Numbered from the stretch's first letter, positions 49,608 to 55,539 are shown. The stretch is 64,000 nucleotides of DNA from Cyanophora paradoxa CCMP329 (GCA_004431415.1 QPMI01000282.1:1-64000), one strand, 5' to 3'. Notes: generated from the sequence alone by a model not told the origin. Numbers and translations: made by a program.

Positions 49608-51510
49608 CTAGTGGCCGACCCGGCCGGAGAGGGGTCCGGTGGAGCGCTGGGAGCGGGGGGTGGTGCCGACGGTGACGGGGGGCGCCCCGGCGGCCTCGGC
49701 GCCCTGCCGGCGGGCCACGAGGCGCGTCAGGCGGCGCTCGAAGAGGTCGAGGTCCACCATCTCCGCCGGCGCCCGCTGGGGCGGCTCGCCCCCCGGCCCC
49801 GTGCTCGAGCGCGGCGACGGGTTCGAGCCGCCGCCGCCGCCGCCCGTTGCTGAGAGGGCCTGGCTCTGGTTCGCCGCGGAGGAGGACAGGGCCGCGGTCA
49901 CGAGGGAGCCCTGCGGGACCAAGGGGCCGTGGGCGGGGATGGGCCCGGGCGGCAGCGCGCCGGCCGCGACGGCGCGCTTGCGGCCGGCGGGGGAGAGGGT
50001 CTGGAAGTGGGAGGGGAATATGATGGCGTCGCCGGCGGCTGCGGCCTCGAGGGTCCGCCGGTCCTCCTGCTCGCGCTCGCGCTGCTGCGCCCGCTGCACA
50101 AACGCCGGCTCACCGAGCGCCAGCTGCTGCTGCCGCCGCGCCGCCGCCCGCTCCCGGTGCTTCGCCCGCGTCTCCTCCGCCTTGCTCGCCAGGCTCTGCC
50201 GCCGCTTCGCTCGCGCCTCCGTCAGCGCTGCGCCCGCCCCGCCGCGTCGGGGGCGGATCGATCGATCGAGCGAGCCCCGGCCCCGGCTCGGGCCCCGGAG
50301 CCGCCCGCGCACCCTCGACCTCGCACTTGTTGAGCTCCTCGCGCCGCAGCCGCTCGCGCTCCCGCTGCCCGCCGCGCGCGCGGCCTCAGCAAAGGCGGGC
50401 GGGGGCGATGGCTTCGACGAGGCCAGAGAGGGCGCACCCCCTCCTCGGTGCTCCCGAAGTCGCGGTCCCTCGTGAGGGCCGTCGAGAAGTCCCGCGGGTG
50501 CTGGGCTAGCCGCAGTTGCTGCGGGGCCGCGGTGAGTGAGACCGGGCCGGGTACGGGGCGGGGCAGTACGGGTGCACAAGGGGCGCACCACGGCGTTGTA
50601 GTCGTTGCAGAAAGCGCGGTCGAGCGTCGTGGCGCCCGTGCGGAGCGAGGAGGAGCCCGAGGCGGGACGGCGCTCGGTCATGGAGCCCTCGGAGGGCGGC
50701 CGCCGGTGCGCGTGGTGCACGCTCGGCCGCGGCGGCTCCCGCGCCGTCATCGCGCGCCCCTCGCCCCGCGCCCACCGCTCGCTCGGCGGCTGCGGCTCCC
50801 GCGCCGAGGCCCACGCGGCGCTCGAGCGGGCGCTCGGCTCGCCGGCCGCCTCCGCCGAAGGCCGCTGGGAGGCGGCCGAGCCGGGCCTGCTCGAGGTCCG
50901 CGCCGTGGGCGCGTGCTGGTAATTCTTCAGCACGTTCTCCACGCGCTTGTGCGGCAGCGGGTAGTCGTCGCTGAGGAGGTTCGTGTACGTCTGCTGCGCC
51001 CAGTTCCGCAGCCAGCCGCTCCGGATCCCCATCGATTCCAGCTCCGCTACCTCCCTCTTCGTCCTGTCCATGAAACTGTGGCCCTCCTGCGGGCGCGCGG
51101 CGCTTAGCTAGGAGTCCGAGACCTCAGGGGCGGTTAGCCCTTCCGCCATCCGCTAGCTAGGATGCCCAGGACAGCGCAAAAACGACGGCCTACCGTTGTG
51201 CTGAGCTTGCTGCCCATCTAATGGCCCGGAGGTCAGCAGGGCGCGGGCGGGCCAAGATAAGCCGGGCCCGGACCTTGCCCTCGAAGGTGTCAATCTCCTC
51301 CCAGACGCTCTCCTTTGCGTGTTCCGCCTTCAGCTGGCGGATGAGACTCGCTTTCCTCCCCGGCGTCAAGGTTTCAGAAGGCTCGAGGTTCGCCACAGGC
51401 GTGTGCTTAACGGGGCGCAGCGAAGCCATGAGGGCCTCGTATTCGTGACCTGGGCGCTTTTCTTCCTCATCCTGTGCCGCTCGGCTACGCTCCGTCCGGT
51501 GCGTGTCCAT
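49608..51510 (-). CDS. Hypothetical multi-exon protein
   Basis: MDTHRTE...WEEIDTFEGK; FMDRTKREVAELESMGIRSGWLRNWAQQTYTNLL; coiled-coil middle region; stop at 49608. Confidence 0.6.
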
Positions 51511-51598
51511 TGCTGGCCGCTTGGTGCTGGGAAGGCTGTACCCCCAGCCACTCGATTCCCCGGTCGCGGCTGAAATCGCAAAAAGAGCAGCTTCCACG

Positions 51599-54500
51599 AT
51601 GGGGTTCAAGACGCCGGGAGAGGTCTATGCCTACCTCGAGGTGCGCTCTTCCACCGCCGTCTCGCTCCGAGCGCGGCGGAGCGAGTGCCAAGGCTGACGC
51701 CCGTGCGCTGCCGCAATTCGCACCTGCGCCAAGTAGAAAGCGGGTACGCACGATTTCTTGTATCTTTCGCGCACGCGCGCCTCACTCCGCCCCGCAGGAG
51801 CGAAGAAATGCCGTGCGCCACCCGCCCGCCCGCGGCCCGCGCTGCGCCTTTGCACTCGCTTGTTCCGGCGCACAGTCGCCGAGCGCGGCAGTGCCTCGCT
51901 GACTCTCGCTCGCCCTTTCCGATCTTGCGCGTTCGCAGTTGATCTCCCTTGGCACCGCACCTTCACGCAGGCGTTCGCGGCAGGCATGTACGTCGCGCTT
52001 GGAGCGACGAACGCGTGAGCGGCCCGACTCCCGCCTCCCCGCATTTGCTCGAGCGCCTCGCAGATTTACCATCGCGGGCGGCATCATCACGCGTCACTCC
52101 GCTGACGAGCCTGGCACCGATCCCGGCTGGCAGAAGCTGGCCTACGGGGCCGTCTTCCCAATCGGCATCATGCTCGTGCGCGCTCCTCGCTTCGCGATTG
52201 TTCCGTTCTTCGAATTCCGAGCATTCCTCGTCCACAGGTCGTCTGGGCGGTGCGCTGAGCGATTCGATGCCATCTGAGCGCGCTGCATCTACCGCGCGAG
52301 CGTCGCTGCTGAGCGCCTCGCGCTTCCCGGACTCGCGGCCGCTCACCCGTGCCGTATACGTACGCGTCTTGCATTCGCTGGCGCAGGGGGCGGAGCTTTT
52401 GACTTCGAACATGTTTGTTCATCCCCTCCGAACGCCAGCGCTAGTGGCCATTTCTAGCTTGACTCGCTTCGTACGCTCCGCAGGATGGTTGACGTGATCG
52501 ATTTCGTGCACCGCACCAGCTGGAAGACCTTCGGCGGCGTCATGAAGAACTGTGCGACCCGTTTCCGCCTTCCGAACTGCGCCGAGTCTTGACAGCTTGT
52601 CGCTCGCGCAGGGACCATCGTGCGCAGCCCCGAAGCACTGCGGCTCACGCGTCGCGCAGCGGCTCACGCGCCGCGCCGGCAGACGTGGATCGGGAACCTG
52701 TGCGGGTGCTTCTTCACGAGCTACTTCCTCTCGTACCACACGGGTCTCTTCGCGAACGACCCCTGGCACCACTGGGTCATCTCCTTCGTCGAGCACAAGG
52801 CATGCGCATGCGCTTTCGATGTCGGAATCGAATTTGATCCAGGCGCGCGCGCGCGCGCTCACTGCGGACTCGCGGTCGCAGGCCGAGCTGGAGTGGTACC
52901 AGGTCTTCCTTCGAGGCATCGGCTGCAATATCCTCGTGGTGCGAGCCGCACGCGATCCCCTTTCCCGGCCGGCCCGGGCCCACCTTTAGATCTTCTCGCG
53001 CTGAATCCGATGCCGGCGCAGTGCATGGGCTACTTCATGGCCGGCGCGGCGGTCCGTGTCGAAGGCTCTTGGCTTCTGTGCTCGCCGCTCACTTGGCCCC
53101 CGGTGCCGGCCCGCAGGACGACGCGACGGGCAAGTTCGTCTGCCTCTGGTTCTCCATCTTCGTGCGCGGTACCCCCCGGAGAAAGGGTCCGCTCGAGCTC
53201 ACCTTAAACCCGCCCGCCCGCCCGTCCGGCCGGTCGCAGACATTCGCCAGCATCGGCTACGAGCACTGCATCGCGCGCCCGCCCCCTTCCGCCCCGCCGC
53301 CCGCTCCCCTTGGCTTCTTTGAGGCTGTGCCGCGCCAGGCGAACATGTACTACTTCCCGACGGCCATCATGTACGGGGCCCACGTCACCTGGTCCGCATC
53401 GGGTCGTACCCCTGGCCCAGCCTGGTGTGCCCTCCTCGCTCCGCTGAGCTTGGGCCGAGCAGGGGCCGCGCGTTCACGAACTTCATGGTCTCCACCTTCG
53501 GCAACATCGTCGGAGGTGCGCTTCACCTGTTTTGCGCCGTGGGCGAGCGCGCGGGAGCTCGCCAACTCTGTTGTGGTTTCGGTCCTTTAGCCGTCGTCTT
53601 TTGCGATCTCATCTTTTGGTGCGGGCGCCCCCGCCCGCCCGCCCCACCGCCCCGGCTAGTTCGGCACCCGACGCGGGGCGGGCGGGCCGGGGCGGGCGCA
53701 GGTTCGGGTTCGGGCGGCTCTACTTCCGCGAGAACCCGCTCATGCCGGCGCACAACTGCCACCGCCACGATTCCCGGTGAGCCTGCCCGGCCCGCACCGC
53801 GCCTGGCTTCCTTCCTTTCTCCGCCGACTCGTGTCCTCCCTCTCTCTCCGTGCAGGCCGACGGACCACCTGCCGGCGGACAAGATCAAGATGAACGACAT
53901 CGTCTCGCTCATGAACCCGCGCAACTCCAGCATCGACCCGCCCTCCGCCGCCTCCGGCAGCGGCGAGTCCGGATCCGTGCGCCCTGGGGCCCACTTCATT
54001 GTTTTTCAAGCTGAAGCTCACGGCCCGGGCGCAGCACTGCGGCGTGAGCGTGCCGATGAACCCCTACGCCACGTGCGCCGCAGCACCCCCCCTCACGCCT
54101 TGCCCCTCCCGCCCTCCAACCCTCTGGCCTCTCGCAGCTACAGCGGGCTGGCGCCGGCGGGGACGTGCAGCTACTTCAAGCGCTACGTGCACAAGGACGG
54201 CCGCGTCGTCACCGCCCGCGTGCGCCTTGGAGAGGAAGGAGGCCTCTAACTGGATGACATACATGCTTCTAGAGCGCTGCGCCGGCCCTCCTTCCCTTCC
54301 CAGCCGACCGGGCGCGCGGTCGCGCGCAGGTGGAGTCGAACGTGCTGCGGGGCACCGACGGCACGCCGCAGAGCCTCGAGGCGCACGTCTTCCTCCCCGA
54401 GACCCCCGAGGAGGTGTGTGTCTCCGGGCCCGCCGGCCCTGGCCGCCCCCGCCCCCGCCCCAGCCCCAGCGCCAGCTTAGCCGCCCGCAGCGCGGAGTGA

Positions 54501-55005
54501 TCGTCATCGAGCTGACGCCCGACGGCCGCGCCGACCACATCATCTTCGCGAGCAAGGCCCGCGCCCTCCACTCGACCCCTCACCCCCGCCCCTCTGCGCG
54601 GCCTCTGACTCCGAGCCGCGCGCACAGTCCTTCTGCGACCTCCTCGGCTTCTCCGAGGAGGAGCTCAGGTGAACATGAGCTTCAGCTCCCTTTCCCCTTC
54701 CCCGCTCGTTTCTCAGGTGGCCGGCTTAACTCTCGCATTCGAATTCGCAGGAGCCGCCCGCTCAACTCCGTGACACACCCGGACGACTTCGCCATCTCCG
54801 ACAACGCCGTCAGCAGGCGCGCGAGCCGCGCCCCGCCCCGCCCCGCCGCGCCCTAAATATCAACGGCGGCTCGGGCAGGGTGCTGAAGGGCAAGGCAAAC
54901 GGCGACGCCGGCGCGGCGCTCCCGGCCGTGCTCGAGGGCGCCAACCGGCGCCGCTCGTCGGTTCCCATGCCCAGTCCCAGCGGCTCCATCACCGTCGACG
55001 TGTGA
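51599..55005 (+). CDS. Formate/nitrite transporter (FNT; NAR1/FocA/NirC family) with C-terminal PAS-derived module
   Basis: FNT motifs AFAAGMYVALG, GAVFPIGIMLVVWAGAELLTSN, NWTITWIGNLCG, FLRGIGCNILVC, FASIGYEHCIANMYY, TFGNIVGG. Tail has KRYVHKDGR and FCDLLGFSEEEL..VTHPDD. Confidence 0.93.
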
Positions 55006-55539
55006 GCGCCTCTATGTTCTGTCGCGCCGGAATTCGGCTGTCCCAAGCTGACGTGGGAGTCTCGGCCGCAGGACAAGCCCCGGCTACAGCCTCCACAAGT
55101 CCGTGGACTGATGAGGCGGCTTCAACCTTCCGTGGGGCCCGCACCGGATCCGTCGGGCCCGGCGCTGGCGGCGGCGCTGCGATCAGAGGGGATATATATC
55201 GGCGGGCGCCAGCTGCGGGTGGTCGCGCGGCCACAGCTTCATTCGATCTCTTAGCTTGACCACTGAAGGGCCACGAGTGCCGGAAAGCGAGCGCCAGCGA
55301 ACAGCACGAAGGAGGCGGCTCGAGGTTCTCCGAGCCCACATGTACAGCTGCGCAGTGCGCGCGCGCGGACTCGAGGCACTGTGCACCAAACATTAATCGC
55401 AGATAATTCGTTAGGTAGCCTAGTCGCCATCTGTATATAAACAAGAGCAGCAAGGACGTCGACGTCGACTTTCGAATTCATCGACGTCATGATCAGTATA
55501 TATACGTACTATATCAGCTAGAGCTCAGCGTGGCGACGA

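Follow-up and report, generated by a model that had tools for sequence, protein, structure and literature searches.

The 64,000-nucleotide stretch of the Cyanophora paradoxa CCMP329 genome analyzed here (assembly GCA_004431415.1, QPMI01000282.1:1-64000; hereafter the window) contains the gene tig00001208_g7534, whose sequence identifies its product as an LCIA/NAR1-like anion channel of the formate/nitrite transporter (FNT) family. The channel is followed by a C-terminal tail in which the elements of a PAS domain stand in swapped order. We consider it likely that this tail is a natural circularly permuted PAS domain, which arose at the junction of a tandem PAS array through loss of the linker and has been kept by selection. 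An initial annotation, made from the DNA sequence alone, had proposed an FNT channel fused to a PAS module with the PAC part ahead of the core, and most of what it proposed was borne out, with corrections to the exon map.

The public protein model of the gene, P0001 (EukProt tig00001208_g7534.t1, 408 aa), was retrieved through a protein search with a stop-free reading-frame query (53323-54246). An exhaustive search with the tail and a search with a full-length FNT recovered the same architecture in three Cyanophora paralogs (P0004, 531 aa; P0045, 493 aa; P0152, 545 aa), which lie on different contigs, and, as a weaker match, in a de novo assembled transcript of the glaucophyte Cyanoptyche gloeocystis (P0153, 427 aa).

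Pfam Form_Nir_trans (PF01226; TC 1.A.16) matched residues 14-165 of P0001 (profile positions 92-240 of 240; E 1.5e-44; 152.6 bits against a cut-off of 34.6), and the paralog P0004 spanned positions 1-240 (212 bits); the N-terminal part that P0001 lacks is encoded upstream in the window. The closest solved FNT was Chlamydomonas LCIA (PDB 9v2a, E 3e-36), with the bacterial HSC, FocA, and NirC behind it, so that "LCIA/NAR1-like" denotes the best solved match by sequence similarity and not phylogenetic orthology. The central pore histidine of the S-loop lies in an EH motif (E223/H224 in P0004 numbering) that is invariant in the protein alignment and aligns with that of LCIA. The threonine of the AELxT omega-loop is also kept, the AELLT motif being encoded at 52387-52412. 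The glaucophyte proteins thus share with the green-algal LCIA/NAR1 proteins and with FocA, NirC, and HSC the full Form_Nir_trans domain, the central histidine, and the AELxT loop; unlike these proteins, which have neither PAS nor any other soluble sensor, they bear a C-terminal extension of 240-260 residues. As the FNT domain starts already at residue 8, a long cleavable transit peptide would have no space ahead of it. The transported anion may be formate, nitrite, or bicarbonate.

In the extension of P0001, Pfam PAS_3 (PF08447, clan CL0183) recognized residues 314-361, corresponding only to positions 1-50 of the 89 in the profile (35.2 bits, cut-off 25.6), and a second weak PAS_3 stretch appeared once the piece holding strands G, H, and I was included. 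Automatic annotation already assigns the two Pfam families to these proteins but does not record the permutation. When Pfam was scanned exon by exon, only a 39-residue FNT exon scored, the PAS exons (21-40 residues) being too short. The Pfam matches of the tail included no LOV-specific or heme-PAS-specific family.

The canonical PAS order is the core (strands A and B, helices C-F) followed by the PAC part (strands G-I). We built a canonical PAS profile of 118 positions from 150 full-length domains of multi-PAS proteins found by exhaustive search. All five glaucophyte tails matched it exactly twice, first at positions 68/74-107/113 (G, H, I) and then at positions 11/23-68/73 (A, B, and helices C-F). 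The first piece of P0001 covered positions 74-107 (24.7 bits, E 7e-10) and the second positions 23-72 (40.0 bits, E 1e-14); the corresponding pieces of P0045 covered positions 68-113 and 11-73. Among 2000 shuffles of the first P0001 piece the best reached 6.1 bits, which upholds the earlier claim that PAC-like strands precede the core. When the two P0001 pieces were re-ordered computationally, they gave a single match to positions 23-107 with 70.4 bits. The pieces together cover all nine PAS elements (A-I), which appear in AlphaFold2 models as five strands and four helices, and G-H-I stands before A-F in five of the five proteins. As judged from these complementary profile matches, the two pieces add up to precisely the elements of a single PAS domain, divided at the F-G loop, as the initial annotation had supposed.

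The PAS profile, which detects short exons with limited sensitivity, found no further PAS-like piece in the five proteins or in a six-frame translation of the window; there is thus no sign of the hidden upstream core or downstream PAC that the initial annotation had named as grounds against its reading. Searches of PDB sequences with phmmer and with a profile of the tail matched the core half only (PERIOD, hERG, ARNT) and left the G-I piece unmatched. Language-model features placed the module among single-domain PAS clusters (0.97).

The best sequence relatives of the tail are the tandem PAS arrays (S-box, PAS_3/PAS-PAC) of bacterial histidine kinases and diguanylate cyclases (E down to 1e-35); the alignment is collinear, passing from the PAC of a repeat to the core of the repeat that follows. 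A word-index search of the tail gave a single bacterial kinase and missed the paralogs, whereas an exhaustive search recovered the paralogs and returned 3872 matches. Many of these span both pieces in a single alignment, and the best of those that do are bacterial S-box proteins. In a BLASTP alignment with a triple-PAS kinase, the first piece fell on the end of repeat 1 and the second on the start of repeat 2, with a 22-residue gap where the inter-repeat linker is expected.

The spacing between the two pieces sets the glaucophyte tails apart from such arrays. We counted the residues that separate the end of strand I from the start of the next strand A at 651 tandem junctions, taken from the 147 closest multi-PAS proteins: there were 17 or more in every case, with a median of 24. 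The four Cyanophora proteins have 9-10. A tandem PAS-PAC array would hold at least two complete repeats with a linker of at least about 17 residues, whereas each glaucophyte protein gave two complementary half-domain matches. The glaucophyte tail has the elements of one domain, without the linker of 17 to 24 or more residues and without an N-cap helix; moreover, the module lacks a kinase or cyclase output, is fused to a channel, and occurs in a eukaryotic host. A plain slice of a tandem array was therefore rejected, since the linker between the domains has been lost (9-10 residues, compared with 17 or more in the 651 junctions). What stands of the earlier comparison with a slice across a PAS-PAS junction is the collinearity.

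The spatial order of the PAS sheet is B-A-I-H-G, in which A and I are antiparallel neighbours. Since the I-A loop is of hairpin length, the swapped order would make the sheet a simple meander in the order G-H-I-A-B, after which the helices come. A spacing of 9-10 residues fits an intramolecular hairpin and for this reason favours a true circular permutant over a domain-swapped ring.

Structures were predicted with AlphaFold2 from five-sequence alignments for residues 236-408 of P0001 and 350-482 of P0045. The P0001 segment had a predicted local confidence (pLDDT) of 85-94 over the module and a predicted TM score (pTM) of 0.59; for the P0045 segment the mean pLDDT was 81.5 and the pTM 0.71. Both models contained five strands with short connections, followed by helices C, D, and E and a long helix F, with low confidence past F. 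A compact fold of the module is thus predicted with confidence. A Foldseek search of the PDB, which requires the same order of elements, found nothing at E≤1e-3, and tandem PAS chains aligned at a root mean square deviation of about 22 Å, which indicates that the model is not arranged as two half-domains of an array. A structure search of Atlas clusters gave none above a TM score of 0.45. The absence of sequential structure matches is what would be expected for a predicted permuted topology and does not amount to a positive test of it.

The initial annotation had offered a domain-swapped ring beside the circular permutant, and we retain it as an unlikely alternative. The G-H-I piece of one subunit would complete the A-F core of its neighbour, and five split PAS domains would be assembled into a ring or a chain below the pentameric FNT. 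Such an assembly would be in keeping with the conservation of both halves and with the frequent oligomerization of PAS domains, and the pentameric state of FNTs (9v2a has five chains) would hold five tails close together. However, an I-A loop of hairpin length, constant across the four Cyanophora paralogs, speaks for pairing within one chain, and the AlphaFold2 models are confident and compact as monomers (pTM up to 0.71).

Conservation was expressed as the mean pairwise identity among the four Cyanophora paralogs (P0001, P0004, P0045, and P0152):

FNT region: 57% identity.
Linker: 22% identity, heavily gapped.
G-I piece: 56% identity, no gaps.
I-A loop: 31% identity.
A-F core: 51% identity, with a mean of 1.2 gapped columns per pair.
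C-terminal tail past helix F: 24% identity, heavily gapped.

Both PAS halves are under a constraint comparable to that on the channel, which argues against a decaying remnant. The module was present in every Cyanophora FNT found, and among 120 relatives whose Pfam annotation had been precomputed it occurred in none from outside the glaucophytes; the FNT-PAS architectures that the initial annotation had suggested looking for were thus found in glaucophytes. All the glaucophyte relatives found keep the swapped order, so that the permuted tail is probably a working, naturally rearranged module with a putative regulatory role, and no accident.

These data bear on a second alternative, in which the tail would be a fragment of a tandem junction captured by exon shuffling and translated, but without fold or function. 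We hold this to be highly improbable. Collinearity with tandem PAS junctions, the recognition of half a domain only by Pfam, and the unconserved residues past helix F would all suit a remnant, but in four paralogs at 40-50% identity the halves are as conserved as the channel, and they are recognizable in a second genus, whereas their flanks fall to 22-24% with many gaps. Among the four Cyanophora paralogs the G-I piece is ungapped and the core nearly so, the connection between I and A has been shortened to a constant length, and the AlphaFold2 predictions are confident. The possibility raised beforehand that the tail might prove unstructured and unconserved is contradicted by its conservation and by its predicted structure.

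Within the poorly conserved linker between channel and module, the motif DHLP..D.I.M.D..SL (P0001 about 187-205; window 53856-53920) is common to P0001, P0004, and the Cyanoptyche protein, but not to P0045 and P0152. The motif may serve for docking or form an amphipathic segment.

We propose the following model for the permuted domain. The channel C-terminus would continue through a disordered linker of about 85 residues into a circularly permuted PAS domain of the S-box/PAS_3 type. In it, G-H-I would be followed by a hairpin loop of 9-10 residues, by A and B, and by helices C-F, and the new ends would lie where the F-G loop used to be. Its sheet (B-A-I-H-G) would become a five-stranded meander capped by helices. 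The domain would have originated at the junction of a tandem PAS array whose inter-domain linker was lost; the permutation would predate the duplication of the glaucophyte FNT genes, and the module would have been under selection since. Both termini are cytoplasmic in FocA-type channels. The domain would fold within one chain, and five copies would lie on the cytosolic face beneath the pentameric channel. By analogy with KCNH channels, these copies might couple a signal (a small ligand, the redox state, or a partner protein) to gating, stability, localization, or partner binding; ligand binding by the module and its control of the channel are putative.

The gene itself is well supported. P0001 threads exactly through the window in 20 exons, from 52485 to 55111, every intron is GT/GC..AG, and the chain of exons is the same as that given by the RNA joints. 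We compared positions 51500-55500 with contigs from three RNA-type runs (X1, X2, and X5, from two studies) and one DNA run (X12). The RNA nature of the three runs had been guessed, and their GT/GC..AG joints show that the contigs are spliced transcripts. From the FNT end to the start of the PAS-like part, the RNA contigs contain the joints 53618/53702, 53776/53856, 53976/54035, and 54072/54138; further downstream the joints are 54219/54330, 54413/54491, 54556/54628, 54668/54751, 54816/54879, and 55001/55072. Beyond 55072 they run unbroken past 55500, so that the 3' untranslated region extends to at least 55500. The DNA contig is collinear with the window over 53673-55500 and shows none of the splice joints. 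All the tail exons of the initial annotation were real and in frame, with exact joints in X1, X2, and X5, and the FNT exon 53702-53776 is joined to the tail in the X2 and X5 contigs; X5 additionally includes the exon before it, whose end is at 53618. The gene is real, nuclear, and expressed, has many exons, and carries FNT and tail in one spliced transcript region, as the initial annotation had assumed.

It is scarcely credible that the FNT and PAS pieces belong to separate genes or that the order of exons was misassembled, for although no single contig spans the whole gene and one RNA contig (X1) has unrelated sequence upstream of 53855, the joined contigs X2 and X5 (the latter with the exon ending at 53618), the collinear DNA contig X12, and the same order in three paralogs on other contigs and in the de novo Cyanoptyche transcript all contradict such an artefact.

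The features of the gene, all on the plus strand, are as follows:

51599-51640, plus strand: probable first coding exon (ATG) of the FNT gene, absent from P0001; 12 of 14 residues identical in tblastn with the P0004 N-terminus; depth of RNA contig X2 over 51500-51633.
51941-52177 (about 51941-52015 and 52071-52166/52177), plus strand: upstream FNT exons for transmembrane helices TM1-TM2, absent from P0001; tblastn with P0004 residues 23-85; RNA contig X1 covers 52088-52177.
52485-53776, plus strand: eleven FNT exons of P0001, with Form_Nir_trans positions 92-240 and the start of the tail; exact threading, the PF01226 match (152.6 bits), and RNA joints.
53856-53976 and 54035-54072, plus strand: two linker exons; RNA joints, 22% mean paralog identity, no Pfam match, predicted to be disordered.
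54138-54219, plus strand: exon for strand G and the beginning of strand H, where the PAC part opens; PAS profile positions 74-107, equivalent to P0001 residues 252-285, and AlphaFold2 strands.
54330-54413, plus strand: exon for the remainder of strand H, all of strand I, and the short loop from I to A; RNA joints, AlphaFold2, PAS profile, and the loop measurement.
54491-54556, plus strand: exon for PAS core strands A and B, followed by a GC-AG intron; RNA contigs X2 and X5, and AlphaFold2 strands at 63-70 and 76-82 of the segment.
54628-54668, plus strand: exon for PAS core helices C and D; Pfam PAS_3 positions 1-50, equivalent to P0001 residues 314-361, and RNA joints.
54751-54816, plus strand: exon for helices E and F, containing the THPDD motif; the intron after it is GC-AG; RNA joints, Pfam, and PAS profile.
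54879-55001, plus strand: exon for the end of helix F and the unconserved C-terminal tail; RNA joints, pLDDT 40-61, 24% paralog identity.
55002-55071, plus strand: last intron (GT..AG, 70 nucleotides), which contains the TGA at 55003-55005; joint from 55001 to 55072 in X1, X2, and X5, not in the DNA run.
55072-55111, plus strand: last coding segment, with 12 further residues and the true stop TGA at 55109-55111; RNA contigs continuous from 55072 to 55500, and the P0001 C-terminus.

Three details of the initial annotation had to be changed. The stop codon that it placed at 55003-55005 lies inside the last intron, and the reading frame continues for 12 residues to the TGA at 55109-55111; these residues are unconserved and contain no PAS-like or PAC-like element. 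Its exon set also overlooked the 28-nucleotide exon 53591-53618, which encodes part of the last FNT helix. Finally, two introns of the tail (donors at 54557 and 54817) are of the GC-AG type, as confirmed by the RNA.

The public model tig00001208_g7534.t1 begins at an internal methionine (52485) and leaves out about 90 N-terminal FNT residues that the window encodes. Because the N-terminus of P0004 matches exons at 51599-51640 (with ATG), 51941-52015, and 52071-52166, sequence comparison indicates that the window encodes a complete FNT and that P0001 is truncated at its 5' end. A short exon for residues about 15-22 (near 51788-51802) could not be phased cleanly.

The window consists of GC-rich eukaryotic sequence in which very short exons and introns are numerous, and dips in GC content at 6-12 kb and 38-46 kb of the window fit inserted elements. 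An 8-nucleotide micro-exon (52612-52619) occurs within the FNT coding region, and its letters are present in X1 and X2 between the joints at 52552 and 52683. GC donors occur in 4 of the 19 introns of the P0001 model (after 52799, 53272, 54556, and 54816), which is an unusually large fraction within a single gene; at least three of the four agree with the RNA contigs.

Contig X1 departs from the other contigs in two places. It reads through 52167-52177 and then holds nine letters of a micro-exon region (about 52240-52248) with non-canonical boundaries, which would insert four residues in TM2 relative to the paralogs (IML-VVWA-GAEL expected); the structure at 52167-52249 may be an alternative or aberrant splice or an error of a low-depth contig. 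At 53761-53855, X1 shares only the last 16 nucleotides of exon 53702-53776 and has about 370 nucleotides of unrelated sequence upstream. Possible sources are an alternative 5' exon, chimerism of the contig, or a paralog; in X2 and X5 the normal FNT exon stands at this place.

Known systems resemble the glaucophyte proteins in part. Fusions of an FNT to a soluble regulatory domain exist in prokaryotes (P0154, P0155, P0156, and P0159), but the partners are a receiver domain or CoA_binding; none has a PAS domain and none is eukaryotic. The KCNH (hERG/EAG) K+ channels carry a cytosolic PAS domain covalently on a multimeric ion channel, where it modulates gating, and the hERG PAS was among the PDB sequence matches of the tail profile. 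They differ in belonging to an unrelated, tetrameric channel family and in having a PAS of canonical order at the N-terminus (the "eag" domain), so that they serve as an analogy of mechanism only. The engineered cpLOV2 shows that a domain with the PAS fold can be circularly permuted and retain signalling (bioRxiv 10.1101/2021.05.19.444876); cpLOV2 is man-made, binds flavin, and was cut at a different site from the glaucophyte module. Our literature search found no FNT-PAS fusion, no natural circularly permuted PAS, and no relevant work on Cyanophora FNTs; engineered cpLOV2 was the only permutant that it returned.

The PAS domain is one of the most widespread signalling folds. FNT channels (FocA, NirC, LCIA, the Plasmodium lactate transporter) have been described as bare pentameric pores. 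To our knowledge, little has been established about the regulation of FNTs, and we know of no FNT with PAS-type gating. A lineage with a conserved sensor-type domain on every FNT found offers a direct handle on this regulation and may bear on the control of bicarbonate or nitrite entry in the earliest-branching algae. A natural permutant with termini in the F-G loop would show how new topologies arise from tandem arrays and would offer protein engineers an evolved template. It is conceivable, although we would not expect it, that glaucophyte FNTs are gated by the first known natural permuted PAS domain, with five sensors opening or closing the anion pore in response to a metabolite or redox signal. 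If true, gating by a permuted PAS would be a regulatory principle new to FNTs, possibly part of carbon or nitrogen acquisition in glaucophytes.

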